DNA of 64,000 nt from Kudoa neothunni (GCA_964304625.1 OZ199838.1:2953947-3017946), one strand, 5' to 3'. Positions 1,758 through 40,917 are shown, counted from the stretch's first letter. Program-made: numbers and translations. Notes: generated from the sequence alone by a model not told the origin.

Positions 1758-2679
1758 TTAAGGGGCCACAAACTCTAAGGTTAAATTCCTTATTTTATGA
1801 TTTCCAAGCAGAATATTAGCATATTCAAGGTTGTTGTGGGTATCACGGTAAGCTAAGTGATGATCCTTGTACATCCAATCTAAATTTTTTTATTCATATG
1901 GTTAAAATTATTAATATTTTAATTGAGAATTAAGTTTAATAAATTTACAAACAGGAATTAATTACTTGTTCTAAAGATCCTCTGGAAGTCGGTACATTGT
2001 TCGTCAATATAACATAGCTCATTTGAATAATTAAGTATTTGTCTTCTCATCTAATTTTCAATATTATACGAAAGCGGTTTTAGATGGGAAAATAAATTAT
2101 TATTACCTCTTGAGTAATTACAAACTTATTATTAGCAAGTTCAAGGCGATAAATGAAAAGAATCAGCTATCCTGCAGTTAATTACATTACAAACAATTTT
2201 TCATACAATACAAGGTAAGCAAGTGACTTTTTCCTTAAAATAGATGACTAAATTGATAAATGGATTCATTAACCTACTGACTACTAAGAATTTACTGTCG
2301 TTATCATTGCAACTGGCGAAATATTTACAAATTTCGTCAGGTTGTGGGTACATATTGACAAAGGCGTTCACCTTGGGTGTTACTTTTCGAATTATGCTTC
2401 TCTACATTTATGTTAAAAGAATTAATTAATAAAATTACTTTTATTTCACTATATTTAAATAAATTTTTATCATATAACTCCAATAAAGTTGTTATTATTT
2501 GTCGAAGAGGTGCGCCTTGCATTGTGAACTGAAATTAGTTATTTACATATTCATTTTTTGGACTAACAATTCTCACGGGGCTTCCTAACGTGATTTCAAA
2601 ATTGAGCAAATCTAAATATATATTTTAAAATGAAATTTCACTTATAGTTACGAAACGAAAGCAGAAAAAATGTTAACAT
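1758..2679 (-). CDS. Secreted swaposin-like (permuted saposin) protein, paralog 1, 8 exons
   Basis: Spliced by eye with 7 GT-AG introns: MLTFFLLSFHLLNFEITLGSP-FTMQGAPLRQIITTLLELYDKNLFKYSEIK-RSIIRKVTPKVNAFVNMYPQPDEICKYFASCNDND-IIYFKEKVTCLPCI-LILFIYRLELANNKFVITQE-MRRQILNYSNELCYIDEQCTDFQRIFRT-NWMYKDHHLAYRDTHNNLEYANILLGNHKIRNLTLEFVAP*. Frame is open and intron positions match the four paralogs. The gene model is firm; the fold call is inference. Confidence 0.85.
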
Positions 2680-3884
2680 TGATCCCAATATTAATTAAAA
2701 AATTGTAGATATTATCTAAAAATATTCCGCTCATATCTTCTTATGATTTCTATAATTTCTATGGATACACAACCGCTGATAATCTAAAATTGAAATTTCT
2801 TAGGAAGCATAAAAAGAAATGATTACGTTATCTGTATTTTCTTATTTATAACAGATAAAAATACAAGTACTTTATATAGTGGGTCTCTTAATTGAACTCG
2901 GCATTTTTTTCATTCAATTAAAAGTTTATGTAAAATATTAAAAATTCTTTTATGAAGCATTGGTTTATTTTTAGTTAAACATAAATAAATCTAAATTGAA
3001 AACAGTTAATTTATGGTTTAAGCGCAATTCTTAAAAATTTATTTGTCTGTTCCTCACTTTATCTACATTCAAATCTGAACAGATAATTATCTAAAAATAG
3101 ATGGTTTATCTATAAATAATTAGTTTTTAACAAAATATTAATACTGAAAACTTTCATTGTGGTTCTAATGCGAAAATGCATGTAATGCATTGATTTTCTA
3201 CTTTCCAATTTTTTCGTTGCATCCATACACAACTCTATATATATATGTATATATAATTAATTCGTCCTCTGTTTATAATTCATATTTCAGAAAAAATTCG
3301 TATAGTATTATCATAATTTAATAAAATTGGGTGATTAAATGGCAATACTCCTGGCGTAATGAAATGTATTATTTTAAATTATAAATTCGTGATGCGGCAA
3401 ATTTTCATTAATATTTACTTTTGGGTGTATATTGCGTTGTAAAAATGGTAGAAAGATCTCGTACTTAAAATTTCCGTTTATTATAGTGTAAACTATAAAA
3501 ATTAAGTCTTTGGAAAAGGTGGTTTTAAACTTTGTTACATGTAGCATCATTACAAAATAAATTATATTAATTTCTTTTTATTTTCCATTAAATTATCACT
3601 TAACTGTTTTAATATTTTTTACCAAGAATGAATTGAAGTTAATATTTCATATTGATTAGACCCAAATAAAAACATTAGGGGTTGTATTAAATGGGTTTTG
3701 AGGATTATATGTAAAATTGCAAAATAATGAAATAAAATATTAAATATAAAATAACCATATAATATAAAAACGTCTCTATTTAAAATAGCCTAATAATAGA
3801 AGAAATGATTATAAATGCATTGAAAAAATAAATATACACATTTTGATATTATTAAAACATTTTTCTAGACTAAGTGCGAATATT

Positions 3885-4820
3885 TTAGGTTGATTCCATC
3901 TTTAACGCAATATTTGTTATTTTAAGATCTTTAAAAAGAATTATGACTTCTTCAAGGCCGTAACGATTTTGATAGCCGTAAGATACATGATTCATCAATT
4001 TTATTTCTAAAATTTACAATTATATATATATATATATTATCACGACGATATTATTTTGTTATAAACGTCATGATAACTACTTGAATTAAATGGTCGCTGA
4101 GAATCGTTGCATTTTTCAATCAGATAACACAAGTCGTTTGCGTAATTAAGAAATTCTTGTAGCATCTATAGTTTAAATCAAACGTGAATTTATAACGATC
4201 AGAATAAAATTTTTGGAACATTAAATATTTGAGGAACTCAACGAAATCAAAGAGATTACTTCGCCAGTAACGTCAAATGTTTTTGCCAGGCCAAGTCGAT
4301 AAATATAAAGAACCAGCTATACCGTAATCAGAAAAAATAAACAAATTAAGCATACAACACAAGGTAAACAAGAATAATCTTCCCTAAAAATAAGAACTAA
4401 ATCAAGAAAAATTTACTTAGCGTTGGTATACAAAAACTACTTGTTGTGCCGTCGCAAATGGCAAATATTTTACAAATTTCATCTTGATCGGGGTAAATAC
4501 TCAAAAAATATTCTATATTATGTGTAGCTTTTGCAATAATACTTGTCTATAAAAGTTTTAGTGGTTGGCCTTTAAAATATACTTTCGTGTAGCTGTATTT
4601 GAATAAGACGCTACAATTCAGATCCACTAAAGCTTTCATTATTTGATAAAGGGGAAGACTTGATATTGTAAACTATAATAAATCATTAAAATATACTAAT
4701 AATTTATTAGTAAATTTTACGAGTGTTGGTGTTGTGATTTTAATGTTTAAACAATCTAAAAAGGATTAAAAATAATCAGCGTCACAACTTACAAAGAAAC
4801 ACCACACATAACACCAGCAT
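3885..4820 (-). CDS. Secreted swaposin-like protein, paralog 2, 8 exons
   Basis: MLVLCVVFLYCLNIKITTPTL-FTISSLPLYQIMKALVDLNCSVLFKYSYTK-TSIIAKATHNIEYFLSIYPDQDEICKIFAICDGTT-ILIFREDYSCLPCV-LVLYIYRLGLAKTFDVTGE-MLQEFLNYANDLCYLIEKCNDSQRPFNS-KIKLMNHVSYGYQNRYGLEEVIILFKDLKITNIALKMEST*; intron phases 1,0,0,1,0,0,1 as in the paralogs. Confidence 0.85.
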
Positions 4821-5607
4821 TCGAATTATTTGAGTTTATTAGGAAGATATTACCTCAATATTTTTAAATTAATTTATCATTATAAGTTATCTTTGATATC
4901 TAAAATTTTATAATTAATGATTGAATATATATATCTCATTCAAACAAAAATTTGTCACATTATCTTATAACTCAAAATTTGATAAGCTAATATAAAAGAA
5001 TATTTATTTAATTAAACCTATTTTTTAAGGTAAAATTTTTGTATTCCTTCATGTTTAGCAAATGAGTATACAAAATTAATGAGAATGTACTGACATTCAT
5101 TCGTTATAAGACTATTTATCTTTAAGTGATATAGCTTTTTGAAAAATTAATAATCTTTAATCAAACTTTTTGAAATTTCTTAACCTATTTCATTTTTTTT
5201 GATAAAATATTTAATAATATTATATAGATCTTATCAAATGCCCATATCACCTTGGAGATAATATTGATTAGTACCTTATATCATATTTATTATCATATTT
5301 AGTTATTATAATAGTTAACGTAGTTCACGCTATACCTACGATACTGTAGAAAAGTGTGTAAAATTTTTCACGAACTATATATTTTTTCTGTGTTACTATA
5401 CAAAAAATATAATTTTTCAATGTTTCGCATTTGATATTATGGAAATAATACATGTATTTTTTGTAAACGAGATAAGTTATTTTCATGACAAGATATTCAG
5501 AATATTTTGTTTATAGTTTCATCAATCTAAAAAAATATTTTGAATATCACTCAGTTAATAAAAAACGCAAAAACATGTTAAACAAAAATATTTAATGAGC
5601 TAAAAAT

Positions 5608-5811
5608 TGTCATAATCCGAGAATCACGATCCCTCACAATAAAGAGGGAAGTCGTTCCCGGGTGGGCGACCCGGTGGAGACCGAGGCAGTGCCCACGCTA
5701 CACGGAGATATACATAGACACGACTAAACTGGGAGGAATACCATCACTACCTTTAGTCTATTTTATTCCAGTTCTCTTTCTTTTGCGCGGCCTTAATCCC
5801 AAACTATAACA
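5608..5811. mobile_element. Solo LTR-like element (204 bp)
   Basis: GC-richer island with termini TGTCATA...TATAACA (6/7 inverted match), flanked by the direct repeat AAAAT at 5603-5607 and 5812-5816. Confidence 0.65.
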
Positions 5812-7034
5812 AAAATATTTTTTTATAATAAGGGCGTCCATATTGTATTATCATTATTGAAGAATATTTCGCCAGTCGTGGGTTATTTTATAAATGAATT
5901 TTCAACGAATTATGCTTAAAGTTTTTATATAACTTAACTAATAATTCTTTTAACAATTTCAAGAATGTGTTTAATATCACGTCAACGTAATACAGTATGT
6001 AACCAATTTCACGCACTTTTTAAACCCCCATTTAATAGGAATATTTATTAGTTATTGTTTATATAATATGTTTCTTATAATATTTCAATTAAAAAATTTT
6101 TCAATAATTTTAACAAATTCGAAGTCTTTAATTGTTCACTGATTTTTTTTTATTTGTATCTGTTAGTAATAAGTGTGTAAATGTTCAAGCTTAACTTCGT
6201 ATTTTTAAAACAGAACTTTCTGATTTATTCTATTCAAAATTTTAACGAAGATGTTTAAATTAAACTATGGCATAAATTAATGTGTTTTTTAGTTTATAAA
6301 TTTTTTCGCATTCATTATTCATGATTTAAAATATTTTATAACAATATTTGTTCTAAAATTCCAACATGAAAATTTTTAATTTATTTTATTCAATTATTTA
6401 TTTATATATATATATATATATGTATATAAGTGAATAAAAACAAAAATCTTCAATAATTATTTATTAATTAAAATTAACTTAAAAGTAGAGTAATCGTCAT
6501 AAATAAAAAAAAAAGTCATAATCCGTTTATTTGAAAATCGCGCAATCCCAAAAAACCTTGGTTGAAATTTTTGAGTAAAATTACTATGAAATCTGAATTA
6601 ATGTCTGGTTAAATAGCACCTCCATCCATTTTTTGGATTCATAAGTTCGTTATTTATTCAAATTAAGTTTAAGATTGGTTAATAGAAACAACTCAATGTA
6701 GATTATTATAGTTCGTGTTCGAAAGTCAATCATGTGGACAATGGACAGGAAAATTTTGAGTAAAAACAAATTCCCTTACATCTTTTCATGAGTAATAAAT
6801 ACCAAAAATAAAATTTATTGGAATGTTTAATCACAAACTAACAATTACTTCATAAAATCAATATATCGATGGAGTTGACCCAATTCAACAATGTTCGTTC
6901 ACACATCTACTTTTTCTATAACACCACCACTATTAAGTCCTATTGAGACGTAACAATCATTAATAAATATTAAATTGTTGGAATAAAGACATTTTTCGGC
7001 TCCAGCAGGAAGTGTTCATGAATTGGCCGGAAAT

Positions 7035-7800
7035 ATGAATTTGAATTCCTTATTTACTGGCGATTGGTTTATAGAAGATGTTTTTAAGTTTAAAAATTGC
7101 AATAAAAAATTTATTGAATTTTGCAACGTGTTGAGTTGATTCCAGAAACGAGGGATTGTGGTCAATGTCACCAATTTATGGCATTGAAACAATTTAACAT
7201 AATGAATGACCGTGTGTTTTGATCTTATCAATGAAATAAACGGGTTAAAATTAAGAATAGATCCTTTTTTATTACGCCAAATTGTCGTTATGGAGAACAC
7301 TTTTCATGATGTATTCGAAATTAACGGCATATAAATGAAACAAAAAAAATATCGTCGCGAGAAATAATATGATGATGGAAAAACTACATAAGAGAAATTT
7401 ATAAAGAGTATTTCATTATTCATAGGCCCTCTATTGATGGTGTTGATGTGATTGAGAAAATAAACGAATCTCATGTTCGTAAACGAAAATTTCACCGTGG
7501 GAGTGTCCTCATAAACTAGACTATTAGGATCATGGGCGGGATTAATTCTACTGTCAACTTTTTCCATGTCCTTGCTGAGAAACGCATCCAAGCCATCCTT
7601 TAAGAAATAATAATTCAAAATATTAATAGAGATTAACTATGTGGACGTACAAATGACCTTCTTATCATAATTTAACCCACTTATTTAATATTTAATACTA
7701 AAGGTTTTACGAAACATAGTATCAAGTTTAAGAATGTCAAATGTGTGCATATAAATCTAATAGAGGCCATTTAATTTGCAACCAAATGCAAATTCAGATG
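7035..7800 (+). pseudogene. Merlin/ISXO2(IS1595)-like transposase remnant
   Basis: Disrupted translation contains ETRDCGQCHQFM (zinc ribbon), IDGVDVIEKINESHVRKRKFHRGSV...IMGGI and VHINLIEA, matching the VEIDES..KRKYHRG / WVFGG / HTNxIE motifs. Confidence 0.75.
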
Positions 7801-8419
7801 AATCACCAATACAAAATCGGAATTTTTGTAAATAATTATTTCAAAAAAATGCCCTGTTAAAATATTTTATCAATTTTCTTTAGAATAATTAATGAAATCC
7901 ATCCACATTGTCGTATTTTGGGCGTTTTATTTTAGGCCCGATTTGTCGCGACAGATGCCGAACGATGTACTTTACCGTATTTTAGTCGCATATCTCAATT
8001 AAAAAGTAATTTCTAAATATCGTTAAGGAGAATTCTAGGAAAATACTCCCCATTGTTATTTTAATTATTCTCACTATCATTATTAGTACAACCTACAATA
8101 TCCATATTGAGAAGAAATTGTAAAAAATTAATAATAATAATAATAATAGTCTATTTTTTAGAATCTAGGATGTATTATTGAAATATGGCGCGGTGGTGTT
8201 AAAATCGTACATCTCTGTTGTATGCGTGCGCCGACTACGCTGGATCTCTAACTTTTGTACCTTAAACTAATGTTTTCACATTGTATTCACCAGCATAACT
8301 TATATATTTATATAGTAGAATATTCGTTTAAAATATAAAACAAACATTAGATAATGGAAAATAAAGTATACAACCAACCTACCATTTTTTATCATTGCAC
8401 ATGCGCATTCATCAAATTT

Positions 8420-8496
8420 CGTTGAACCCGAAATTTCAGTATCCGAAAGAAATATGCCAATCCAAACATTTTCGGATAAACAGGGTTCGACTGTAT
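8420..8496. mobile_element. Tigger/pogo-type MITE end
   Basis: Ends ...cggataaacagggttcgactg|ta (CAGTCGAACC-type TIR with TA target); similar to 28572-28653. Confidence 0.45.
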
Positions 8497-9466
8497 ACGA
8501 TCTTTAAGCTGTTTATGTTCAATCAATTATGGATGTTATTACGTGTAAAACATTTTTTTATTATTTATCTCAACGATATAAAAATGATGTAAAACCTAAA
8601 AATAAACACTTAGTACCACATTTTCGCATATAAAAATGAAATTCTACGTCGTATTTTATAATTTTCTTCAATATTTTTGTGTGTTTGAATGTTTCGAGCG
8701 TTTTACACTAATATAATTAATTTACTGAGATGTATTATCTATCAAAACGTTTACAAAAACTAGTAACAACCACAAAATATTGGAATAATGAAATCCCTAT
8801 CAAAATCCTAATAATCCTCATATCAACACAGAATCACCCTCGGTTTTTAAAGGCCTAGTTTTGACGCACTTTTTTCTTCGTCCCGGGGGGATTACGTGAA
8901 GTTGGTCCCCTACTGTAGTTTCTTTGGAGAAAAATAAGAATAAATCCTAATCACGCTCAGTTTGGTAAAATTAATATCAAAATAATATTTTAACAATATT
9001 TCACAATATTTAAAGCATGGTTGCTTTTGGATATTTATAAATAATAGTGTATACAAATAAGTACAAAAAATCGATAACTTTGGACTAAAATATTGGGATC
9101 TATTGCAAGTGAGATTTAGGAGAATATATGCGGAATGGTCCTTCGGGGTGATTCCCGACTACTTTTAGTTTCACAAATTCTTAATTTTATATTAACTACT
9201 ATTTTAAATTTAAATCAAATATTGAAGTCATGAGGTATTTACAATTCAACATAATTTGGTTGTTAATTTTATGTCATTGAAGAAAAAATAGTTTTTTATT
9301 AGAGTACAAAGCATTTTATTACCATTAGATTCATTTGTAAAATAAAGTACTATAATTATATATATATGTACTTAGTCAATGACACATTTATTTATTTATT
9401 CTGAATATAATTTTTTCGAAAACATTCACTAAATAATATTAATAGGCATACGTTAACTAAATTGTT

Positions 9467-10407
9467 TTAAAGAGTTTCAAACTTTAAGGTCACATTGGCA
9501 TTTTTGTGATTTCGTGGAAGGGTAACGATTTCTATAAGCTCGTGCGGTTCGCCATTATAATAATATTGATTATCACTAATATATTTTTCTAAAATTATCA
9601 TTATTGAAAAGTCTAAAAATATTTTTTGTAATTAATGATTATTTATTTAACCCGTAATGAAATTTTTCGAAAATACCCATACTATGGAGACCATTGAAAT
9701 CTTCGCAAATTTTGCTTGTGTAACACATATCTTCTGCATATTTGAAAGATTCATCCCTAACCTAGAGTTATAAAAGAGTAATATTAAAAATATATTATAT
9801 TTAAAAAAATGATATGGCATATAAAAAATTTAGTAGATTACTTTTTTAGTTATATAAAAATATTTGTCTGCTAATTCAATACGATAACTGTAAAGAACCA
9901 ACTATTCGAATATCAAACATATTTATAAAGTTATTTCATACAACACAAGGCAAACATGTTTGTTTTCTCTTAATAATAAGGACTAAATTTTTTGACAACT
10001 GACTAAAGCATTTTTCAAAAGCAGAAACTACTTTTGTTACCCATGCATATGGCAAATTTTTCACAAATTTGCTCTGGCTTGGGGTACTCATTGAAAAATT
10101 TTTCTACATCAGATTTAGCTCGTCTGATTATTGTTTTCTATAAAATATATATATATATATAATTTTGAAGCGGTTACTTTTATTTCGCTAAATTTGAATA
10201 AGTTGTTTCCACATAACTCGCTTAATGCATTCATTATTTGAAAACGGGGTGTACCTGATATTTCGAACTATAATTATTTATTTTAAATAACAGAATGTAT
10301 TATCTCACATGTTTTTGAGATGTGCTTCGAAAGTTAAAACAATCTAAAACAAGTAAGAATGAAATACATCAAACCTTACATAGTATAACCACAATAAGGT
10401 TAAACAT
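9467..10407 (-). CDS. Secreted swaposin-like protein, paralog 3, 8 exons
   Basis: MFNLIVVILYCFNFRSTSQKH-FEISGTPRFQIMNALSELCGNNLFKFSEIK-KTIIRRAKSDVEKFFNEYPKPEQICEKFAICMGNK-ILIIKRKQTCLPCV-LVLYSYRIELADKYFYITKK-VRDESFKYAEDMCYTSKICEDFNGLHSM-EKYISDNQYYYNGEPHELIEIVTLPRNHKNANVTLKFETL*. Confidence 0.85.
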
Positions 10408-11332
10408 TTAATTATTGATGTATTATCTATGCGGTTAATTTGCTTAGATATTACAGTTTATATCGTAGTATAATAAGTATCTATGTTTACTAACCAAAAG
10501 ATAATTGTTAATGGTTAAATCGCAGAATGAGATTAATATTATTAATAAAAATTGGGTTCAAAACATAAAATAATATCACCAAATGGTTATCTGATAAATA
10601 TATTTTATTGTAGATACCAATAGATAACCTAAATATTTATAGGTAAATATGAATTACAATTTAAACAAGAATCCAATGTTACTCCAAGTATACAAAAGAA
10701 TCGACGATTCTATTATGTTTTATCGCAACAACATTATTTTTTTATTCAAAGATAAATGAAGATAATAAAGACGACATTTTAAATTCCAAGCTGATTGAGG
10801 TTTTTTAAAGTTTAAAACTACATAATTTCATCAATCCTTTAACCCATCGGTTATTAAACATTTTACAGGTTTTGAACCCTTGTTAACGTGTTTCCTCGAA
10901 AATAAGACATGATAGCTTTTACTATTAAAAATTGATATAACACTGGGTTGTATTTTCAAGGAAAGATTGTATGTATATTATCATATGCGTGTTAGTAAAT
11001 GAGGGGAAATGGTAACGCCTAATTTTAGATAATTTTCCCACGACCAGGGATGATTGCCTAAACCCGTTTAATTATTGTATGTATAATTACATAGATTTAG
11101 TTACGATTAACTTAAATATCAATAGAATAATCTTTGTCGAAGCATTTCAATGGAAAATATCAATCTATTTTTGAATTTTCGCTCACTCTCGATCATATTT
11201 TCCCTTATTTTATATTTTATCTGTCAATAATGTTCTATATTGTTATTAATTGTTTATTATTAAATCAAATCAAATGTCGATACCAAGATTCCAAAACGCT
11301 TGAAAGGTTAGAAGAGTTTGAGGACACCAAAT

Positions 11333-11693
11333 AAATTGTTAAAATAGTTATATTTGTTTTTGCCTAAGGAGGTCTATGTAAATTCACAAGATGTAAACAT
11401 TTTTAGAAAAACACAGATTACATCAGTTTTAGAATGCATATACAGTCACCAAATTATTCCTTTACGACAACAATTCTTAATTTCAAATTACGCATTTTAT
11501 TTAATATCATCATAAGACATTTTACTTTGAAGCATCTTTAACCTTTGAATAATGAATCTACATCGTAAATAATTTGGTTACACCACAATCTTTATAAGGG
11601 AAATGCAACATCTCCTGAAAACACGGCTTTAATAGCTTTATCTGTCTTAAAATCACTCCAAACGACATATATAACATTCTCACGGCATTCTAT
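11333..11693. repeat. Repeat B (about 360 bp), inverted near-identical copy of 16814-17172
   Basis: Reverse-complement match throughout with few mismatches; a diverged relative lies at about 27300-27950. Confidence 0.9.
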
Positions 11694-11815
11694 TGTAGCG
11701 GATGAGGATCGAACCTGAGATCCTCGAGCTGAAAGTGGCGGGGCCTTACCACTTAGACTACGGGCCATAGCGCACTTGAAGTTAGACGCAACTCTATTTA
11801 TGTGGATGTGCCACA
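11694..11815 (-). mobile_element. tRNA-derived sequence inside a short TGT...ACA-bounded element (SINE head or mini solo LTR)
   Basis: Minus strand GGCCCGTAGTCTAAGTGGTAAGGCCC...CAGGTTCGATCC has A- and B-box-like motifs but no acceptor stem; termini TGTAGC...GCCACA. Confidence 0.55.
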
Positions 11816-12339
11816 GTATTATAAGTAAAACCTAAATAACTAATTTTACTAATTATTTTCAAACCTTTATAAAAATACTAGCGTGCCTATCAAACTAAAA
11901 ATACATTTTCCACAAAAATATTATAAACTAAAATTATAATTACTCCAAAAATTTATTTGGTGTCCTCAAACTCTACTAACCTTTCGAGCGTTTTGGAATC
12001 TTGGTATCGACATTTGGTTTGATTTAATAATAAACAATTAATAACAATATAGAACATTATTGACAGATAAAATATAAAATTGGCACTGGCTATTACCACG
12101 GGAATCAATTTCTCTGCAATTATTATCTCTATTAAATAACTAATTTCATTTTATTATTTATAATTTTTTCTATTAAATTAAACAATTAGATAACAATTGC
12201 GAACATCTTTTTTTACATATTTATATTGTTTATTTGATTGATTATTTTCCTTATTTGGTTAAAATGTAGAATAGTGGCCGTAATACAAATCAGCGACCAC
12301 GATAAAAATCTAACCTGTTGATTATTCTAATTTTTTATA

Positions 12340-16466: not shown

Positions 16467-16499
16467 CTTTACTTAACGATTTCTTGAACTAAACACATT

Positions 16500-18226: not shown

Positions 18227-20060
18227 CCCTCTGGAGCACGCTTGGGGTCTTTTAGACCCCACGTGGTTTTAATATCGCTGTAATATTTTTCGGTTTAAGC
18301 TATTGACTCGTAATTAATTTTATTCGCATATTTTTGTACAAAAATTATAGAGATTTAACAGATATGGATTTTGAAAATTTTTTACATGGTGATAGCAGTG
18401 ATATGTTTTAGTCGGATTCGGAGACCTATAGCTCTGACTCCTATTTGGATAACGTACTATCAGAAAACAATGATATATCTGATTCTGATGTGTCAAAAGA
18501 CATTAGCGATGATGAATTGATTGTTGACTGTTCAAATATTAATAAGGATACATTACATGGAAAGAATTATGAATGGTCGCCTAATCCAGTCGGGTTATTT
18601 GGCAAAAAAAGAAAACATGATATTATTCAAGAAAAACATCGAATCAATCTTCCTGATAATGTTTATACGGAGTCTGAGATATGGAGCTTATTTATTACAG
18701 ACGAAATACTGAACGACATTCTACATTTTACAAATGACCACCTAAAAAAATACAAACTAATTTCAAACGAAAAAGAGATTGCGTTGAATTTGATTTATGT
18801 GAATTAAAAGCGTTTATAGGTTTACATTGTTTTCTTGGCGTAAAAAAAGCTAATTTAACCAATATGAATGAACTCTGGGCAGATATCTTTGGATTTTCCA
18901 TTTGCAAAAAAGTACTCGGCCAAAATAGATTTAAGTTATTGAAACGTTGTCCACGTTTTACGAATGACTCGTCAATATCATTGGAGTCCTCTAATGATAG
19001 ATTATTTAAAATTAGAGATGTTATTAGCCGCGTAAAATCCAATTTCTTAAAATACTATACTCCAACCGAATATTTAACAATTGACGAAATGCTTCGGGCG
19101 TTTAGAGGCAACTGTATTTTTAAGCAATACATGCCTCTAAAACCTGCAAAATGTGGCATAAAAATCTTTAATATGGTATGGCCGATGCCAAAACATGTTA
19201 TTCCTTAAATATTAAGGTATACTTCAGTGCTCAAAATGTTGGCACTCATAAAATTGACAACTCACCAAAAAGTTTAGTACTGCGATTGGTAGAACCGATT
19301 TTAGGTTCTGGTAGAAACGTTACGGTAGATAATTGGTTTACCTCAGTTCCTCTCTTCGAAGAATTATTGAAACGTGGTATCACTGCATGTGGTACTATTA
19401 GAAAAATTAAAAAGGAGATTCCTTCGGAATTTCTACCATCGAAGACAAAAGAGATATACTCATCCATGTTAGGCTTTACTAAAGATTTTACATTACTGTC
19501 ATACACTTTGAAAAAAAAACAAATCTGTCATATTATTGAGTTCTTTTCACCATAAACCAATAATAGATTCGAATCATTCCCGGAAACTTCCAGAAATGAT
19601 TTCATTTTATAATTCCACCACGAGAGGTGTAGACACAATCGACCAAATGTGTACCAATTATTCTACCTATCGAACTACCAGAAGGTGGCCAGCAGTAATA
19701 TTTCATGCGCTCCTAGATGTAGTTTCAATAAATCCATATGTAATTTATTGTTTAAATACGAAGAAAAATATTCGGAGAAAAGAATTCTTAAAATCGTTAG
19801 CATTACAATTGCTAGAGCAACAAATGAATCGCAAAAGTACAGATTAATTTATGCATTAATAATATCAATGTAGATGAGGCAAAAATTAAAGAATGTGACC
19901 AAATATCTACTGCCGCAGATAGAAGATGTCATATATGTGTTAGGCAAAATGATCGTAAAACTCAATCAAAATGCAATATTTGTTGGGGAATTATTTGCAA
20001 AAAACATTCTAAAACTATGTGCGATAATTGTTTTGTTAACCCATAACGGGTCCAATGTTT
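18227..20060 (+). mobile_element. piggyBac transposon with frameshifted transposase (PGBD4-like)
   Basis: Left end TTAA|CCCT at 18223-18230. Motifs TIDEMLRAFRGNCIFKQYMPLKPAKCGIK, NVTVDNWFTS, GVDTIDQMC and a C-terminal Cys-rich domain CHIC...CNIC...CKKH...CDNC. Right end not identified. Confidence 0.92.
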
Positions 20061-20299
20061 AGATTTTATTTATAATTTATATATATATATATATATGTAT
20101 TAAATCATTAATAATTAACACTGGTGTAATAGATTTTTGAAATATTAAATATTTAATGAATTACAATCGAATTAGTAATTGGCCGAAAAAGCAACGAAAA
20201 ACTACTAACGTGCGATTTTCCAATAGCAGGTTTGTGTTTGCGGTATACAAATAACAGCTGGTTTAAAGTGAAATAATTGTAAATAATCATGCCTTATGA

Positions 20300-21099
20300 A
20301 ATCTCATTGAACATTTTATGTGCATATAACATTGTCAATTCGTACATAAATGTATTGTAGTTTTTTTACAAACTATACACCTACGTTTCTTTTTTGCAGG
20401 ATGGGTATTAAGCAAGGGTTTTTTGCACAATGATGACGCTTGGAGTTTGGATAGGAACGATGTTCTGGTAAGTTTTTCATGGTCACTAATGCTAATTAAA
20501 CATGTTACGATATTCCGAATATGGTTTAACAATTTTATTTTTCCATCATTTGTATAGGTAACCAATTTATATGAGTTAACCGCAGCCAGGGATAACATAT
20601 TGGTAAACTGGGGCCAGTACCATTCTTTAGATTTTATATTTACTCTGTAACATGAAACTGAAGCATCGACTCCTCCCATGTATTTATTGTACATATAACA
20701 CATGTAAGGTTGAGGAACGTTGTCGGATCTGTTGGACAGGTTCGGCATTTAGTGCATTACTCATTAGAGCTACAGGTTTTGTGTCTCTTCAATATAGACA
20801 ATTAATGCCAAATTCTTTTTCCTTAAATGTTTCGAAGAAACCTCTCGATTTTTTTTCCATCACTTTATTTGTTGTAAGCGGGCATTTGGAAGTACGATTG
20901 GTTCTCACGGTGCCGGTTGCTTTGAGGGATCTTTTCTTTAGTTCAACGAACAATTTATAGGATGTGAAAAAATTGTCCATATAAATATGAGCGTTTGGTT
21001 TATCCTTAAGATCGTCCGCAAAATTCAGCACAACACTGCCACCGAGGCCAAAATATTTATCATATTTCACTGACTTACCTGTATAAACGTCAAAGCTAT
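20300..21099 (-). pseudogene. piggyBac (PGBD3-like) transposase, 3' half
   Basis: FDVYTGKS..GLGGSVVL, YMDNFFTSY, ATGTVRTNR, YNKYMGGVD, WYWP, RRCIVC. The 5' side is replaced by repeat D. Confidence 0.88.
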
Positions 21100-21239
21100 A
21101 CACAAAACAACATCGTCTTTTTGTCAGTGTTGGTGGCAGAGAATACATAATTACAACGCACATACAGGTGCTTTTTCTAATAGAAACCTCATAGTGTTGG
21201 ATTTACAATCATGGGCGTGGTTAAATGATAAACTATATC

Positions 21240-25840: not shown

Positions 25841-25873
<33 letters not shown>

Positions 25874-30475: not shown

Positions 30476-32507
30476 CCTTTTAAATAATTGGAAAATTTAC
30501 ACCCTCCGAGTAAAATAGAGGAATTTTTTACCTCACATTTTTTTTTCATCAAACAATTTAGAATATAAAAATAATTATTTTTGTAAATTTGGAAGAATTT
30601 TTATCGATTAAATTCAAAATTATAAACAAATGTTTCTAACTAAGCTTGCACGGACCCGCTTGCGCACAAATCAATATTTATCACCTGGTGTAGAATGATT
30701 ATTGACAATACGTTTACAAGACACTTAATTATTTTCTAATCTAGGAAAGATTTTAAGCAGCATTAGAATTATTTTGTTAAATATGCGAACAGAAGAATAA
30801 CATTAAGAATAAGACAACATTGACAAAAAGTTATCAATTAAAACAAACATGATTGGAATGAAATTCGCAGCAAGATGAAGCACAAATGTCGCATTTTATT
30901 TCGGTTTTCTATCATACTTCCCATCACATAATCGACATCTCCTTTAACTACTTTGTCCAATTATAACAGATATAGCAGATAACAGATATAGCAGATAACA
31001 GATAACAAATAACAGAGGAGTCTTCACTAACTGCCATATTTTGTTTCCGTCTCAGAAGCAGTCGATGTGTCAATTGGGTTGCAATCATGTTTAAAAATTC
31101 CCTCCTGAGTAATTTTGAAGAAGGGAATAAATTTTTGTGTATACAAAACGTATTGATCAGACTAATATCAACTATATTAAAGAAAACAATTAACGGCAAA
31201 CGACAAGTCATTCGTCTAACATTTATTGCTGTCAATAATCTGGAAATCGTATCAACTCTGCCTTTTACTGCATTATAAGGCGTTATAAGGTATTATGATG
31301 CATTATGACGTGGGGTTTAAATGGCATTTCGGTTGATATTTGAGTGTTTGTTGAGGAGTAACAAAGCATATATCTTAGTATCATTTTTTTGTTGTTAAAA
31401 ACAAAAAGAGATGCATGAAGGGAGTCGTTCTATGTGGTCTCAAATATGACAGTATCTCCCTTTTATTTGAACGCATTGTTCCAACAATCGTAAGTTTTTT
31501 TGTAACAATTCATCCGCTAACTCAATTGACGTGAAAAAATTGTCGCATACCACATTTCCACTAGAACGTTCACATCCCTCGTAACATTTTGAGATCGCTT
31601 TCCCAAATATTCAATCACATTGAAAATAAAAGTTGACTTTTGTTCGCAACTATTAAAAAAAGCGTTAGGCCATATTTTGACGACTTTTTTGACATATGTT
31701 GTTTGAATTTACAACAATCTCTAAAAGCCGAAAGTTGCTCGTCGAAAAAAAAATCCTCAAAAGGTCGAAATGAAAAACTTTCTTGATTTGTTTGAATCTA
31801 TTTAAAGAAAATAGATCACGATAAACTTGTCTTCCCTATTCTAACCAAAACAATTCTTTGACTGGTTGTTGATTATCGTCAAATATTCCCATTAACAATA
31901 AACATCCGATGAATCCATCGAATTCTACAGTATCTAATTGCTTCCAAGCATCACCAGAAATTTTTTGCCACATTGATTTGTATATTTTAAAATTTAATCA
32001 TACATTTCCTAGCGAAAAAACACTTTAAACGTATCAATAACTTCAGATACATTCTGCAAAACGAAAGATGAAACACCAACACGAATGGTCAAAATATTTT
32101 CGGCTGCAGTTCTAGAAGTCGAGGGTTTTTCAATTGTCTAAAAGGTTCCATTCTTATCTATTAAAGAGTCAGATGGATCATTGATTTCAACTTCCGAATT
32201 ATCTGATAGCTTATCATGCATAATGGAATAACCCATGTCTGAAGTATCAGTATCAGAACAGCTGCCGCTATATTCACTCGAGCTCATTTCACCAAAGTTT
32301 GATGACACACGCCGATTGCAAAATGTCCAGTAATGTTTGTTGATTTAAACAATAATTCGTCGACAAAAGTGTATCAAATTGAACAAAAAGGTATTATTTT
32401 TTATTCGGAATAATTTAGTCTAAAAAAATTTTACTCTTAGATTTGAGGTAAAAAATTAAAGATTAAATAGGCCTGAGGTATAAAAATACCCCATTTTACT
32501 TGGCGGG
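30476..32507 (-). mobile_element. Decayed piggyBac element with both ends
   Basis: TTAA at 30472-30475 and 32508-32511 flanking CC.../...GGG termini. Transposase remnants DEQLSAFR, NVVCDNFFTSIELA, YNAVKGRVDT, RLPLIVFFNIVDISLIN. An internal (AGATAAC/AGATATAGC)n microsatellite lies at about 30963-31017. Confidence 0.85.
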
Positions 32508-34497
32508 TTAAAGCTTCTTATTCTGTAATGTTGGGATAAGGATAATATTTTGGTTGTCACAAGCAACATGCTCTTTAAATAAGATTAAAAGACATATTTT
32601 ATGCCAAAATACTTCTTTTTGCGTCGGTTCATTTTTAAATAACACATTTCATTTTTCAACTTGTTTCAATTTATCCTCCATGCTTACAATTAAACTTTGA
32701 TAACTAATTGAATATTTTTTGAACGTGTAGATAAAGATAAATTGGTTGAGTGGTTTATGCCCTAATGGGAAAATATTGTACGACTTGCACCATCTAATGA
32801 ATTTCATAACAGCGCCTAACTCTAATTTTTGGTTGGAAAATTTATACTGGGTTTTTATTGACTCGTTTTGTGGAATTATATTGAATGAAATAAAAACAAA
32901 TCTATTGAATTAATATAAAAATTAAATTCATCTTTTTTTAGATCCTAATGTAACACTATAATAAGTTGTACGAATAATCTTTTTTGCCTAATTAATTGAA
33001 TGTTAATTTGGACGCCTATTTAATTCAAATATTTTAATTAATTATCAAGTGACTTGTATTGAAATGAATTAAATTTTGGAAACAAGTCATTTCTGCCTTC
33101 TTAGATATCTTAACAGAGGAAGTTTTATGCATGATTTTGAGTATACAGATTTCACTTTCAAACTATTACGATGTAGTTTTGTTTTATGTTGATATGCTAA
33201 CAAAACGAGGTTGTTTTAATTATTTTACATTTATAATATTTGAAGGAAATGATTTTATAGAATATATTTTGGTAATGCTACGTTCAAGAAATCTCCCATA
33301 AAAACTGTGTTACTTTCGGATTAATCCCCAATAGAGCTCATATCACAGTTTATTATTTGAAATGTGGGGATATTAAAATATAGACTACCGTATCAACTAT
33401 TACTTGATATTTATTATGTATCAAAATATTTTGCTATACTCTTTAAAAGCATAATTTGTTCTTCTGTTTGTTAATAAAGCGATGATAGTAAACTATCTAA
33501 CTTTGTCACTTAAATGGGATTAAAGTATTTCGTATAATTTAATAGTGCTAAATAGCAACTTTTTCCTAGTTGGTAAAGTCAGAGTTTATTTTAAGATTTA
33601 TTGTCTAATTTCAAAAATATCTAAATATGTTGTTTATTCGTTAGTTTTATGTGTCAAAAATAACTCAGGCTTAAGGAGGTTATGCTTCTGTATTGAATGA
33701 TATAATTGAAAATGAATAACTCTAGGTATTTAATCGAGCTAGTTCTTGTATATCTTAATAGTTCACGTAGAGATACTCCGTTCAAATATTAATAAATAAT
33801 TTCACAATAGGTTCTCTTTGGTTTCTTTAGTAACAATTAAATATCTCTCGAATAAAATTTAAAACCAGGATTGAAGATATCAAGTTAAGTGCTTCTAATT
33901 GAATGGCACCAATGTTGTTCATATATTGTTGCTGTAGTTGACTATTATTCCTTTCACCAAAACCAAACAAATATTAAGGTTTGCAGTCTGTGAAGCTGTA
34001 TCAGGCAACAGGGCTTATTAATTTATTAATGTGAGAATATTGCAGTTTCAAGTCCTTTTTTCTAATTTATGATACCAACAAAAAATCTTATTTTTTGTGC
34101 CGTGGGGCTTTATGCGATTAACCGAAGTGAACATTTTCAACAATATTCTGATTTAACTATAATATTATTGATTATGAAATAATATAGTGCACAGTCGTGT
34201 GTAGAAGTTTAATACCAAATAACCGATTGCGAATCGATAACGATGCCAATATTTTTCTAAATTTCGTTATTTACAATTTAGACGTGAAATTTTCATTCTA
34301 AAACCTAATGTAATCTTTGGAGAATTGTCTAACTCAATTAAGATAAGATTGTTAGTTTTTTAGCATTTTTTTAATTGAAGGATATTTTTATTTGTTATAA
34401 TTATGTAATTAAATTAGACTGATAAAAGTAATTTTTTTGAAAAATTCAGTGTATAATTATTAATGGATGATATATCGTTTTCTGTAAAGGAATCTCT

Positions 34498-35452
34498 CTA
34501 CCAAGTTTTAAACTCCAATTTCACATTAGTTATTGATTGGTTTCCAAGATATGTGATAGTTTCGTCAAGGTTGTTATGTATATCGTCGTAATGAAGTTGG
34601 TTACTCCTCAAAGTGCTGTCTAAAATGAAATTCATGTGTGTAAAATTGATAAAATAATTTTTATCAACTTGTCCAATAACGCAAAAGTTACAATTACCTG
34701 AATAATATGGGTTCTGTGAAGGGTTACATTGATGTGCGGCAAGACACAAGTCGATTGAATAATGGATAAATTGTTCCCTTACCTAAGATATAAACATATT
34801 TAATTATAATGAAAAACTATAAATTGAACTTTGGCGAGTTTTTTTAATTAATATAGATACTTCGTCAGTTATAATAAAGTGTCCTGCTGCGATCTTGAGA
34901 CGATATACGAATAGAACTAGCTAATTAAAAGGAATTGAAATATTTTTAGTAAAAATATTGATATACAGTACAAGGTAAACAAGATTCCTTCTCATTGAAA
35001 ATGATAACTAGATATTAAATGTTTTTTTCTGGGTTGTGATAATATAAAAAAATACTTGTGTCACCATCGCAAATAGCGAAGAATTTGCATATATGGTATG
35101 GCTTCGGATAAATATTTAGAAAACACTCTGTTTTAAGGAGAGCTCCTTTAATTATAGTTTTCTATCTTTATTATATATAAAAAAGTTATTAGTAAGCATC
35201 ACTTTAATTTCACTGTGTCTAAACAATATATTGGAATATAAATCGGTGAAACTAGTTAATGCTTGTGTGAGAGATTTTCCACCTATTTTTAACTAAAAAA
35301 CAAGAGTTGGACGTGTTAATATTATTTTTTTTACGTTTTGTGTTTGTATACTACCTTGGAAATCGAAGGTAACTAAAATAAATGAACATGCGATTTAATG
35401 TTAACATACTTATTGAGATTGTAAACAGTGTTAATGTTAAAAATTTCATCAT
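34498..35452 (-). CDS. Secreted swaposin-like protein, paralog 4, 8 exons
   Basis: MMKFLTLTLFTISIITFDFQGSIQTQN-LKIGGKSLTQALTSFTDLYSNILFRHSEIK-KTIIKGALLKTECFLNIYPKPYHICKFFAICDGDT-IIIFNEKESCLPCT-LVLFVYRLKIAAGHFIITDE-VREQFIHYSIDLCLAAHQCNPSQNPYYS-DSTLRSNQLHYDDIHNNLDETITYLGNQSITNVKLEFKTW*. Confidence 0.85.
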
Positions 35453-36750
35453 TTCGTTTAGTTGATTGTTAGATTTTGCGTTTTATATCGTCTTATTGCA
35501 TTAATGTTAACAAATTTTCGGATTAATTAAGTAGTGCACGATATTATTTCTAATACTGTATTTTTATTGAAATCTAATTGATAATAGATAACATTTACGT
35601 ACGATGTAATATTTTATCTTGTTTTATTTTTGACCTGTTTTGGTTATTCCAAACAGTAAAAATAAAAGCATTAATATTTAATTTTTCATTTTATGTTCAC
35701 TAGAATAGGACTCGATTACTCACTACTCACTCGGGTGTAATAATTTTTGATAAAAAGAAAGTAGTTGCTATATTACATTCATATTACTGAACTTATTGTT
35801 TAACTAGTTGGTATATTTGAAAAGCTTTATATTGTTTATAATTGATTATATTATCTAGTTACATTTATACATAAGATAGAGTGCGCTTTTATATAACTTT
35901 TGAACGCCGTTTTTAATAGAGTGGTGTGAGATTATATTGATAGATTTATGAAAAATATACGTAAAATTTTAATTTATTTCACCATTAATTATTTTATTTT
36001 AATGATAATAATAATGCGGATGTATGGTGAAACGCACACGAGGAAGGCTTTTTGAATCCACTATTTTCATGGATGTTGGAATCAATTTGATTATTATCAG
36101 GAATGATTTCGATATAATAGTGCAGTCTTGTTTGTTTTGTATAAATTTAGATATTAGATTAAATTATCCTTTCATAAAAGTTTTACGATAGTATGTTAAG
36201 TAGTAAAAGAGATTATTTTTTAATAATTGATAAAGTCTTTGATTAGATGGATGACATTGATAATGAATCTTACGATGGTTGATATTATATTAGTAGGTAT
36301 TGTCGATTAATTTAGATTTTTCTTGGATAAATTTGTGTTCTACTTTGCTTTCATAATGCCGTCACTCCACCGTATATTAAGATTTAACCGATTTCTTTAG
36401 AAACTGTCTTCTGATTAATTTAGGCTAATATATTAGAGAGATTGTAATTATTTCTGTAATAATATGTATTATTTTCCCCTGCGAATTTTTCACGTTAAAT
36501 TTATCAGTATAATTTTAAATCCTTGATAAAATTGAATTCTAATATTTTTCTGCACCAACAATTCTAGAATAGTGAAAATTACAATTTAAGTATTAATAAA
36601 TATTTAAATTAGTTAATGGCTATGTCATTTATGCTAGTTATTCTCGAAAATTTAAGTTTGAATTCATATCTCTCACAAAACGTAAATTATAATAATTTTA
36701 CATTTAAAAAATTCTTTTTTTAAATTTTATAATGTGAATTTTGTATTTAA

Positions 36751-36922
36751 CCCTCCTAGTAAAATGAGGTGTATTTCTACCCCAGGCGATTGTTGATGAA
36801 AATTTTTCTCAGTACGCGGTAATGGTTACCTATTATTTTCCAATAATTTTGTTGAAAAAACCTGTGGTGTATTTACACTCCAATTTTACTCGGAAGGTGT
36901 AAAGTTTCTTGATTTTGGAGGG
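36751..36922. mobile_element. piggyBac-derived MITE (172 bp)
   Basis: TTAA|CCCTCC...GGAGGG|TTAA; both subterminal regions match the ends of the 30476-32507 element (agtaaaatg.ggt and ttttactcgga.ggtgtaaa). Confidence 0.85.
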
Positions 36923-37812
36923 TTAATTTATTTCATGTATTTTTTGCAGATTTAAATTTAACGTCAATTAACATTCATTTAATGGAATAAACTCGTCAAT
37001 TATACTAAAGGACGATTTAATTTTGTAGATTTTTATGATTTCATTTATGTAACTATTCACCTAAAAAAAATTTGGCTGTTTAAAATTTTTAAAATTCTTT
37101 TAAAGATATGAACTAATTTTTTCTCGCTTCTGCCTCTTTATAGAACTCATCAACGTTAATTATTGGAATGTATTTTTATTTTTAACACCGCCGCACATTC
37201 CTTAATAGCTTTTTTATTTACTGTGTCTAAGATTAGTCAAATGTTTCAAATATTTTTCCGAGTAATTTTAAAATATGTTTAAATTAATCTCAACTTGTTA
37301 ATAAAGTTTTTGTTTTTGAATCTATGATTAAAATTGTCGTTTAATTATAGATTCAGACCTAAGTATTTGACTCTCACATATTTAATTTTTTTTTCATAAT
37401 ATGTACATAATAAATGGAATATAATACAATTATATTTTTATTTAGATTATGTCAATCCTATAGGTTTCTACTCAATGTATATATTCGCCAATTGATGGAA
37501 AACAAAATTAGATGAGTTGTTGTTTTATCGGTAAAGGTATTTTTTGTTACAATTCAAAGTTACACTTAAGAAATTTTACAAGTTAATTCTAGTATTTTGG
37601 GAATATTTAAATTTAATTAAAAATATTTGCTAATAATATGAATATAGTATATATTAAATATCCTAAATGATTGACCTTTTGTTAATTTAATAAGTTTATC
37701 CATTATTTCGTATATGACAAAATATTTAGATTCGAATGTATTTTTTATGCATGCTTAATATTGATTTAATTTTTCGTTCTTTTAATTAATTAAATAATAA
37801 ATTACTAGTTAA

Positions 37813-38800
37813 ATGAAACGAGTAGATTTGAAGAAAACAATGAACAAAATGGCTAGTTGTGCCATTGCGCATAGTGCATAATTCTATATGAATGACGCGA
37901 ATGATTTTATTGAAAATTATACCTCATTTGGAGGCGAATTCGGCGATCAAGTTATTGATGAAAGTGATATATCGGACCAAGAAATAGATCCCATATATAT
38001 TAATGATAATAATTTGAAAAGTAAGAGTGGAATTATTTGGAGTTTATCAAGTCACTTACGTGAAAAACCTGTGCCGAAAACATAATGAATTCCATCTGTG
38101 GTGTTACTTTATATATTGTATCAAAGATAAAATCATTCATTTATTGGTTTTTATTATCCTTTACCTCAGAAATTGATAGTATTATCATAAATTACGTATG
38201 CAAAAATGTGTTTGGAAATCACTATTTCAATGATGAGTGACATGTTACCAATGAAATTGAATTTAAAGGTCATGTAAGCCTTCTAATACTAATAGCTATT
38301 CAGACATACAAGTACCACTGATAATACTGTCATCGATGCGTCTAAAAGTTTAAAACCTCATACCACAATGCATTACAAGGCAACCAATGGGGTGGGGTTG
38401 ATAATGTGGGTAGAATGTTGGCATCAATTTCTACCCAAAAGTTAAAAAGATGACCGCTTATCGTTCTTTCAACATGATTGATATATCGTTGATTAATGCA
38501 TTTGCATTACTGAATGACATATTTAATTCAGAAAAAAAATTGAGGAGAAACTTTCTGAAAGAGATTTCTAGCGAATTGGAAAATTCGCTGTAAGTAGAAC
38601 CTCCAGAAAAGTTATCAAAAGAAATTTAAATAAATCTGATACTCGAACAACGAACTGAGTTTAAATAAAAAATCGTCACGCTGGGATTATTGTGAAGGAT
38701 CAAATGATAAGAAAAACTCTAAATGGTGTCATAATTGCTGCAAGTTTTATTTCTTCACTCATGCTTCGAAATTCTTTTAAAGTGTCAAAATTAATTGTTG
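37813..38800 (+). pseudogene. Internally deleted, decayed piggyBac transposase
   Basis: Acidic N-terminus, KSKSGIIWS, HYKATNG.GVDNV, PLIV..NMIDISLINAF and a remnant Cys-rich tail; the catalytic core is missing. Confidence 0.7.
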
Positions 38801-39957
38801 TGCTTATTTTTTTACGTTATTTTTTAATTTTTAATGAGTTTTTTAGTAGCCGATAACGTTATTTTTATTTTGTGAACGCGTACTGAGAACGTTGATATAT
38901 CCCGATAATGTCATAAGCAAGATTAGTTTGAGATTATTTGGCGTAATAACTACAATATTCCAATGATTCTACTCGTTTAAGTTTAATACTGTTTTTTATT
39001 ACCTAATTAATTATTTTTTAACACACATCAACGCAATAAAAAGTGAGGCAATTTTTACCCCAAGAGTATTAGGTATTAGTTACAGGGGCAGCGTTTCTGA
39101 GATCGTTATCTGTTAACATTACAAGGTATATTTTTTTTTGAATAATTTTATGATGTATATTTTTGTTTATGCAAATTAATTTTATTTAGAATTTATTCCT
39201 AATCTATAAATTTAATGTTCTGTTGAATATTATTGCTTAGTTTTGCGTTTATTAAATCTCTTATAATGTTTATTAATGATTAGTCTAATGTACTTTTGTT
39301 AGTTTTTATATTTTGTCAATGTATAAAGTTTTACCAAGAGTTAGTATTAAATTTTTTTACATTATGTAAATAAGTTAGATATGTACATAATGTTGGTTAT
39401 CGCTCGTTTTCTTTAATTCTGTATATTTTTGTTAAGAAAATTGTTTCATATTAAGGCTAATTTTTATTTATTATTATTTGAATTTATTTTATGTAAAGTT
39501 TGAATAATAATTTATAACGGTTCTATTGTTATATGAGCTGAAATTTTTCGCTTTATTATTAAAGTATAATTATTCTTAAGAGATTTTTGCCCATCGAAAT
39601 TAAATAATTATGATCAGTTAAGCATTTTTATCATGTTCCTGTATGTTCATTAAAAATCTTTAAATAATATTATTTATTAATTAAATGATATATCATTAGA
39701 ATTTAATTTCTTATAGTATTCATTGAAATTTTTAAATATTCCTTATGTTTTTGTGACATTTATTTTTGCAATACTTTTAATTGAGCAGTTTTATGTGATT
39801 TGTTTTACAAACAAATATAAATTTCTTTTTTGATTAAATATCTCAATTGTGGCTAAAGCACTTTTAAATCTTTCAAGCGCATAATAAAATTTTCGCTAAC
39901 AGAGAATAAAAGAATTTTGTAATTCTAGTGATATCAAATTGATTTTATATTCGACTA

Positions 39958-40917
39958 TTAATGTGCTTCAAATTGAAGAGTCACGTTAGTTATTTGGCGG
40001 TTTCCAAGAAGGATAATAACGTGCTGAAGGGTTTCTTCTTGGTCGACGGCGTAATTTAAATTTTTTTTTGTATTTTTATCTAAAAATTTAATAATGAATA
40101 AATAAATGGTTAAAATAATTTATAACACATTCAATATGGCTTATTTTTATTTTTTAAATTATAATCATTACTTAGTAATGGTGGTATTTGGGAAGGATTG
40201 CATTGTTTATCTAAATAACACATGTCGATCGAATATCGAAGAAAATGTTCTCGAACCTAAAATATATAAAAATTATTCAACAGATTAATTGTTTTGTAAT
40301 CTTTTAATTAAATATTTAAAATGGAGTTTGTCATAAATAATTCACCTCATTATTTATGTCATGAAAATTCCTAATAATCTTCAAGCGATACACGTAAAGG
40401 GACAACTATCTTTAATTTTAATTATTTTCACAATAATAAAGGTATACAATGCAAGGTAAGCAAGAAATTTTTTGTTTAAGCATAAGGACTAGATATTATA
40501 ATGCAATCTAAATAATGATGTAAAAAATTTACTTTTTTTTCCTAGACAAAAAACAAAATATTGGCAAATGTGTGAAGATTCCGGGTAGACGTTAACGAAA
40601 ACCTCTATATTAAGAGAAGCCACGTTAATTATTTTTTTCTGGAATAAATCTTACAAAATATAATGTCAATAGATTACTTTTATAACACTGTGTTTAAACA
40701 AGTCGTTTTGGTATAATTCAACTAGACTAGAAACTATTTGTTCCATAGCAGTTTGTTCCACTGTAAACTAAAATTGTATTAATTATTTGTATATTTATAT
40801 TTAAATTAATTACTTGCAATGGTATACATTTTAGAATTTTGAAAACACCTATAATTACTTTATTTCAATGAAGAATCATCACTAATTACAACATATAAAC
40901 ACAAATAATTTGAACAT
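39958..40917 (-). CDS. Secreted swaposin-like protein, paralog 5, 8 exons (apparent 1-nt frameshift in the last exon)
   Basis: MFKLFVFICCVFKILKCIPLQ-FTVEQTAMEQIVSSLVELYQNDLFKHSVIK-KKIINVASLNIEVFVNVYPESSHICQYFVFCLGKK-ILMLKQKISCLPCI-LSLYVYRLKIIRNFHDINNE-VREHFLRYSIDMCYLDKQCNPSQIPPLL-NKNTKKNLNYAVDQEETLQHVI/(shift)ILLGNRQITNVTLQFEAH*. Confidence 0.8.

Follow-up and report, generated by a model that had tools for sequence, protein, structure and literature searches.

Five tandem eight-exon genes of Kudoa neothunni and an apparently lineage-restricted family of probably secreted, disulfide-stapled proteins with a possible remote relationship to saposins

Gene models and extent of the family

The window analyzed here is a 64,000-nucleotide (nt) stretch of Kudoa neothunni DNA (GCA_964304625.1, OZ199838.1:2953947-3017946), which lies at 2.95-3.02 Mb of contig 1 in a 40-Mb, four-contig, AT-rich assembly with tiny introns; GC content is ~27% over the first 42 kb of the window. 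Between positions 1758 and 40917, the window holds five intact paralogous genes on the minus strand, g1 to g5, whose predicted products are small cysteine-rich proteins of 187-193 amino acids (aa) when in-frame alternative exon-2 boundaries are chosen. Gene models were built from coordinates with a splice-aware dynamic programme, g1 having first been modeled by eye and then checked by script. Each gene has eight exons, intron phases of 1,0,0,1,0,0,1 and GT-AG introns only. Exon lengths are near-identical across all five (28(40)/35(38)/90/106/41/60(57)/85/122 nt with the 35-nt choice of exon 2) whereas intron lengths vary from 36 to 94 nt. The outer limits, the end of the g1 stop codon at 1758 and the g5 ATG at 40917, agree with those of an original prediction made from the sequence alone, and the splice-aware models and the motif scans described below bear out its description of five eight-exon paralogs with hydrophobic N-termini, shared intron phases and invariant motifs that are invisible to an open reading frame (ORF) finder. 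The models are as follows, with exons given from high to low coordinate.

g1, 1758..2679, minus strand, 8 exons, 188 aa (198 aa with the longer exon-2 variant): 2679-2652, 2611-2577 (alternative in-frame end 2547), 2528-2439, 2401-2296 (P-x3-C-x5-C), 2247-2207 (CLPC), 2166-2107, 2050-1966 (C-x5-C), 1879-1758 (stop)
g2, 3885..4820, minus strand, 8 exons, 187 aa, with additional cysteines in exon 3 and near the N-terminus: 4820-4793, 4755-4721 (alternative end 4697), 4672-4583, 4546-4441, 4396-4356, 4316-4260, 4165-4081, 4006-3885
g3, 9467..10407, minus strand, 8 exons, 188 aa: 10407-10380, 10343-10309, 10267-10178, 10137-10032, 9982-9942, 9901-9842, 9761-9677, 9588-9467
g4, 34498..35452, minus strand, 8 exons, 193-194 aa: 35449 (or ATG at 35452)-35410, 35372-35335, 35292-35203, 35161-35056, 35007-34967, 34920-34861, 34782-34698, 34619-34498
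g5, 39958..40917, minus strand, 8 exons, 188 aa: 40917-40890, 40848-40814 (alternative start 40857), 40767-40678, 40638-40533, 40488-40448, 40405-40346, 40256-40172, 40079-39958

In g1, g2 and g5, exon 2 has more than one possible in-frame boundary (2547-2611, 4697-4755 and 40814-40857, respectively); the 35-nt version makes the five genes uniform and does away with an implausible 18-nt intron. Three motifs are invariant in g1 to g5: Y-P-x4-I-C-x2-F-x2-C in exon 4, CLPC-x-L-x-L-x2-YR across the exon 5/6 junction, and Y-x3-[LM]-C-x5-C in exon 7. Six-frame motif scans found exactly five minus-strand copies of each and none elsewhere in the window. Every protein starts with a hydrophobic stretch of 9-13 residues resembling a signal peptide, and no second clear membrane span or hydrophobic C-terminus was found in the five proteins. 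A DTG/DSG protease motif was likewise not found in them, as had been predicted.

Intron 4 of g1 (2248-2295, 48 nt) and intron 7 of g4 (34620-34697, 78 nt) are multiples of three in frame and stop-free, so that their retention would preserve the reading frame; they give rise to natural open frames of 65 aa (2207-2401) and 94 aa, respectively. In-frame, stop-free introns also occur in paralogs elsewhere in the genome, namely intron 4 of L006, L007, L014 and L022, intron 5 of L023 and L027, intron 7 of L016 and L041, and intron 3 of L032.

For alignment, the ratio of nonsynonymous to synonymous substitution rates (dN/dS), cysteine tables and a tree, joined proteins were assembled from the coordinates. 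The products of g1 to g5 share 36-41% identity and dS is saturated, and the dN/dS comparison among paralogs that had been proposed with the original prediction gave values of 0.21-0.57, below 1. Saturated dS together with these ratios indicates that g1 to g5 are old, selected coding genes. Agreement of this degree between the five models greatly exceeds chance expectation.

A profile search of the genome returned 43 matches to exon 4 and 39 to exon 7, several of the latter additional, and the family comprises roughly 50 genes in this genome. Most matches are on contig 3, with a large cluster at 5.05-5.47 Mb. About 40 loci, numbered with an L prefix, were retrieved and modeled for exon structure, cysteine tables and the tree. 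Intron positions are kept throughout the family, exon 4 measures 106 nt and exon 5 measures 41 nt in virtually all of these loci, and the GT donor directly follows the CxPC codons in 21 of the 22 loci examined for this feature. No intron-poor or retro-copied paralogs, and no natural frames spanning exons 5-7, were found among the family loci. In the family tree, which does not resolve the deep branches, g1 to g5 form a single clade, indicating a local tandem expansion. A sister subfamily on contigs 2 and 3 (L009, L023, L024, L027, L038-L042, L044 and others) carries an extra cysteine pair and often has a shorter exon 6 of 39-45 nt. The picture of an expanded, diversified and protease-free family with signal-peptide-like N-termini, as originally proposed, is supported by these data. 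At two contig 3 loci the cysteine content deviates: in L016 an arginine replaces the first exon-4 cysteine while the rest are intact, leaving an odd number, and L046, in which most of the family cysteines are gone, is apparently a decayed copy.

Relatives outside this genome were sought with a profile of exons 4 and 5, A5, built from five natural open frames reading through intron 4 plus exon-4 and exon-5 fragments; 13 intron-derived columns are included as profile positions, with some loss of sensitivity for spliced proteins. Its sole match among 1.84 billion representative proteins is a 35-aa ORF, which sits on a 1,978-bp, 26%-GC metagenome contig in ENA (L031). This contig, the only relative found outside this genome, has the same exon 1-6 layout, its CLPC codon run ends at a GT donor, and it presumably comes from another myxozoan. 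A word search for relatives gave no matches. With one match in 1.84 billion proteins, no word-search match and no Pfam family, the family is, as far as these searches reach, lineage-restricted.

That these exons are parts of larger genes or are spliced differently, or that the copies are not expressed, we consider extremely improbable. Such a reading could appeal to the ambiguous exon-2 boundaries of g1, g2 and g5 and to the lack of transcript reads, as three metatranscriptome runs with the same species label yielded 0 reads on positions 1600-5100; the presence of the organism in these runs was not shown, so the count is no test. It is at odds with the gene models themselves, since each copy begins at an ATG of its own, with a hydrophobic start, and ends at a separate stop, all five are intact with dN/dS well under 1 at saturated dS, and the complete eight-exon unit is repeated at dispersed loci, with the exon 1-6 layout recurring on the metagenome contig. 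DNA sequencing runs holding this locus were also found.

Cysteine framework and tests for saposin homology

Saposin-like proteins (SAPLIPs) include saposins A-D, NK-lysin, granulysin and amoebapores, are represented in Pfam by SapB_1 and SapB_2, and are commonly expanded in parasites. Jellyfish J3-crystallin, a cnidarian saposin-related protein, is reported by Piatigorsky and colleagues (2001) to contain two full six-cysteine saposin motifs in tandem, with one exon encoding a swaposin-type arrangement between them. The present family lacks a detectable SapB motif. Hookworm SAPLIPs provide an example of these proteins in parasites (PMC3184995). The swaposin is the plant-specific insert of phytepsin-type aspartic proteases, in which the helices follow the order 3-4-1-2 (PMC3320104, PMC5717070) and the cysteines run C4 ... 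C5-x5-C6 - C1-x2-C2 ... C3 (PMC3320104).

The invariant framework of the family consists of P-x3-C-x5-C in exon 4, 13 residues, C-x-P-C in exon 5, 33 residues, and C-x5-C in exon 7. This order of C-x5-C, C-x-P-C and C-x5-C differs from the canonical saposin order of C-x2-C ... C ... C ... C-x5-C. It resembles the swaposin in that a C-x5-C unit stands directly upstream of a C-x2-C unit, and the original prediction had assigned the swaposin order to the family on this pattern. The remaining details fit that order poorly. Where C4 would be expected, 24-25 residues ahead of the exon-4 pair and corresponding to the start of helix 3, the exon 3/4 junction has an invariant K or R and no conserved cysteine; an additional, sixth invariant cysteine lies six residues past 'C3'; and the linker between the two units, rather than being variable, is conserved and contains a hydrophobic, strand-like run upstream of CxPC. 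Unlike the plant-specific insert, moreover, the family is stand-alone, animal and free of any protease.

Variation in the cysteines across the genome bears on how they may be paired. The extra cysteines of the sister subfamily are located at exon-6 position 7, 8 residues past the second CxPC cysteine, and 8 residues before the first exon-7 cysteine, and they strictly co-occur, with both or neither present in every paralog in which both exons are readable. The symmetric spacing of this pair is what would be expected if an antiparallel helical hairpin had gained one more in-register rung. Three dispersed singleton paralogs have departed from the invariant framework. L019 (contig 1, 11.46 Mb) and L026 (contig 1, 0.19 Mb) have lost the first CxPC cysteine and the last exon-7 cysteine but keep both exon-4 cysteines, and L012 (contig 1, 14.79 Mb) has lost the first CxPC cysteine and has two adjacent cysteines 3-4 residues past the exon-7 cysteine. 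The co-loss in L019 and L026 with retention of the exon-4 pair suggests that CxPC is stapled to the downstream C-x5-C of exon 7 and not, as swaposin pairing would have it, to the upstream pair of exon 4. On this pattern, a 3-4-1-2 permutation appears less likely than a stapled hairpin of canonical order joined to an N-terminal helical part.

Averaged by column, hydrophobicity follows an amphipathic, helix-type 100-degree period across exon 3, in the first half of exon 4 and again in exon 7. From CxPC into exon 6 the residues are hydrophobic throughout, with Kyte-Doolittle values reaching 1.6-1.8 over 19 residues in g1 and g4, and the tail closes on a conserved pair of basic residues, after which hydrophobic positions alternate, in many cases with an N-x-T.

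Profile searches, from which a SapB_2 signal followed by SapB_1 had been expected, gave no SapB signal for the family in either exon pieces or six-frame scans. SapB_2 (PF03489) matched none of 29 exon-4 pieces of the family even at E<=10, exon 4 covering the whole of the SapB_2-equivalent stretch, and Pfam searches with every exon of at least 20 aa (3, 4, 7 and 8) and with nine natural read-through frames returned noise only. The SapB_1-equivalent stretch is split across exons 5, 6 and 7 (13, 20 and 28 aa) and was scanned in the six-frame genome and in the read-through frames, with no match to the family. Six-frame genome scans with PF03489 and PF05184 missed the family and produced two weak matches each, none at a family locus: the two SapB_2 matches were retrieved and proved to lie in unrelated large genes, and the two SapB_1 matches (E 0.11 and 1.07) were under the cut-off. 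Profiles of exon 4 and of exons 4+5 found nothing among PDB sequences, and neither the A5 search of the 1.84-billion-protein library nor the word search recovered a saposin. When exon 4 was compared by hhalign with exons 7 and 3 as a test for internal repeats, no significant match resulted; only the two C-x5-C motifs align (P=0.06).

Language-model features (Atlas) of the g1 exon 4-5 frame ranked SapB_2 clusters at 0.76-0.85, with all ten named best matches in one clan, but these scores were below the reliability marks of the tool itself. The equivalent frame of paralog L014 ranked Polyketide_cyc/START instead, and the lead, being not reproducible, was not counted as evidence. AlphaFold2 gave a predicted local distance difference test (pLDDT) score of 54.7 for the 65-aa natural frame of g1, the only piece in the window that carries two of the motifs. 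In the literature searched, no work linking saposins with Kudoa was found; myxozoans and saposins occur together only in incidental mentions, and no mention of this family was found. Saposin homology of the family is unproven. The saposin-like spacing of P-x3-C-x5-C and C-x2-C is nevertheless real, and a remote relationship to SAPLIPs may exist.

Proposed fold and competing explanations

Taken as a whole, these results favor, with a probability of about 0.5, a lineage-restricted family of secreted, disulfide-stapled helical proteins that are possibly remote SAPLIP derivatives, with lipid or membrane binding at the host interface as their most likely role. In this proposal g1 to g5 are a local tandem clade within the family, probably of a myxozoan Kudoa, and their products would be small, probably secreted and mainly helical, with three disulfides, or four in the sister subfamily. 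Behind the signal-peptide-like start, exon 3 and the first half of exon 4 would each form an amphipathic helix, the pair ending in Y-P-x-P-x2-I-C-x5-C, and a short hydrophobic strand-like linker would follow. CxPC would then open an unusually hydrophobic helix (exons 5/6), succeeded by a turn and a second helix ending in the exon-7 C-x5-C, and a tail of ~50 aa would close with the conserved basic and alternating-hydrophobic strand motif, usually with an N-x-T sequon. CxPC and the exon-7 C-x5-C would form a double staple of this two-helix hairpin, in canonical and not permuted order, which is the same C-x2-C / C-x5-C tie that joins helix 1 to helix 4 in saposin-like proteins, and the exon-4 C-x5-C would be a separate, independent unit. 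The proteins would most likely interact with lipids or membranes at the host-parasite interface and would have been diversified by tandem duplication.

In comparison with SAPLIPs, which are secreted or lumenal, the family is likewise small, secreted-looking, predicted to be helical and disulfide-stapled, and in both a C-x2-C opens one helix while a P-x3-C-x5-C closes another. It differs in having no profile match, two C-x5-C units with a single C-x2-C, a proline fixed inside C-x-P-C, and a mature protein of ~170 aa that is predicted to be helical towards its N-terminus and closes with a 50-aa tail bearing the strand motif at its end. Several of these and other points weigh against the proposal. 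The pairing argument is drawn from two or three paralogs that are unresolved in the tree and possibly reflect a single evolutionary event, and in L012 the cysteines are rearranged, not simply lost. An exon-4 C-x5-C pair left to itself would be awkward if that segment is helical. A near-invariant proline as in CxPC is not typical of known saposins, saposin-like proteins have nothing corresponding to the tail and its terminal strand motif, and the lipid or membrane function is purely an inference.

How far the family departs from a saposin ancestor can be read in several ways. Tentatively, the proteins could be saposin-derived but rewired, whether as a stand-alone animal swaposin, as a 4-1-2-3 permutation, or as a two-helix 'mini-saposin' hairpin with a helical N-domain, and would then constitute a myxozoan repertoire of ~50 secreted, membrane- or lipid-active proteins. 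The strict form of this idea, in which exon 4 is a SapB_2-type half (helices 3-4) and exons 5-7 a SapB_1-type half (helices 1-2), with the exon-4 C-x5-C bonded to CxPC and the exon-7 pair forming a shortened C3-C4 loop, is unlikely. The two motifs do match saposin ends and, at 13 residues apart, could be bonded; the 24 residues ahead of the first exon-4 cysteine correspond to the length of a SapB_2 half; the Atlas clusters of the g1 piece point the same way; and 3-4-1-2 is an established permutation (PMC3320104). Yet SapB_2 fails on 29 of 29 exon-4 pieces and neither SapB model reaches the family in six frames, the PDB profiles are silent, and the Atlas lead falls under its reliability marks and is not reproduced on L014. 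The C4 position also has no conserved cysteine, the linker is hydrophobic and conserved where a variable loop would be expected, and L019 and L026, which have lost C1 together with the last cysteine, still carry the presumed partner of C1. The original assignment as swaposins is not established, and on this indirect evidence the permutation is the less likely arrangement.

At the other extreme, the proteins may be an orphan secreted cysteine-rich family whose fold is unrelated to saposins and whose spacing is coincidental, serving perhaps in the spore, on the plasmodium surface or in a matrix, or else as a repertoire of variable antigens. Every search was without a homology signal, the strand-like linker and the C-terminal alternating motif are probably non-helical, the Atlas results disagree between g1 and L014, and orphan lineage-specific families, expanded secreted ones among them, are reported to abound in myxozoan genomes (bioRxiv 10.64898/2026.02.11.705288). 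The present family resembles these in being orphan, fast-evolving, tandemly amplified and confined to one parasite lineage. We nonetheless regard an unrelated fold as rather doubtful, as C-x2-C, C-x5-C and a proline four residues before a cysteine make up a specific saposin hallmark when found together, and both the helical periodicity and the in-register extra cysteine pair fit a helical hairpin. A resemblance to the active-site context of thioredoxin, in which the motif and its near-invariant proline likewise follow a hydrophobic stretch 4-5 residues upstream, raises the further idea of a thioredoxin-like redox protein, with a hydrophobic strand, CxPC at a helix N-terminus and then strand-like segments. 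This is very improbable, given that no piece has a Pfam match in the thioredoxin clan and the segment past the first helix lacks family-wide hydrophobicity. The loss of the first cysteine in L012, L019 and L026, two of which also lost a distant cysteine, moreover fits cysteines that are structural and not redox-active.

Neighboring features and significance

Two groups of mobile-element features were identified in the window in addition to the paralogs.

18864-19555 (plus strand) and 20335-21163 (minus strand), fragments of piggyBac-type transposase (DDE_Tnp_1_7), within 18445-21163, which contains several ORFs
43444-43520, tRNA-Met(CAT), followed within 62 nt by a 459-aa ORF at 43582-44961
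47125-48117, reverse-transcriptase ORF (RVT_1, E 8e-26), among further ORFs after the 459-aa ORF

The piggyBac-type fragments, situated between g1-g3 on one side and g4-g5 on the other, are broken up into several ORFs and are thus probably decayed copies. The tRNA and ORFs of 43444-48117 fit a tRNA-adjacent non-LTR (long terminal repeat) retrotransposon; these ORFs are inside a block of 37-43% GC (~44-54 kb), whereas the surroundings have 25-30% GC.

Myxozoans are economically important parasites of fish, Kudoa spoils fish muscle, and their genomes are full of unexplained lineage-specific genes. The ~50 apparently secreted proteins described here, invisible to ORF-based annotation, are a candidate repertoire at the host interface. 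If their saposin origin is true, they would provide either a second natural example of saposin rewiring or a novel type of it, and the ~50 diverged copies would help to trace the rebuilding of a disulfide framework; a truly rewired family would be the first permuted or miniaturized SAPLIP family outside plant aspartic proteases. If there is no saposin origin, the family would instead represent a new small disulfide-stapled fold. Under either outcome, the co-variation of the cysteines provides a testable disulfide map.

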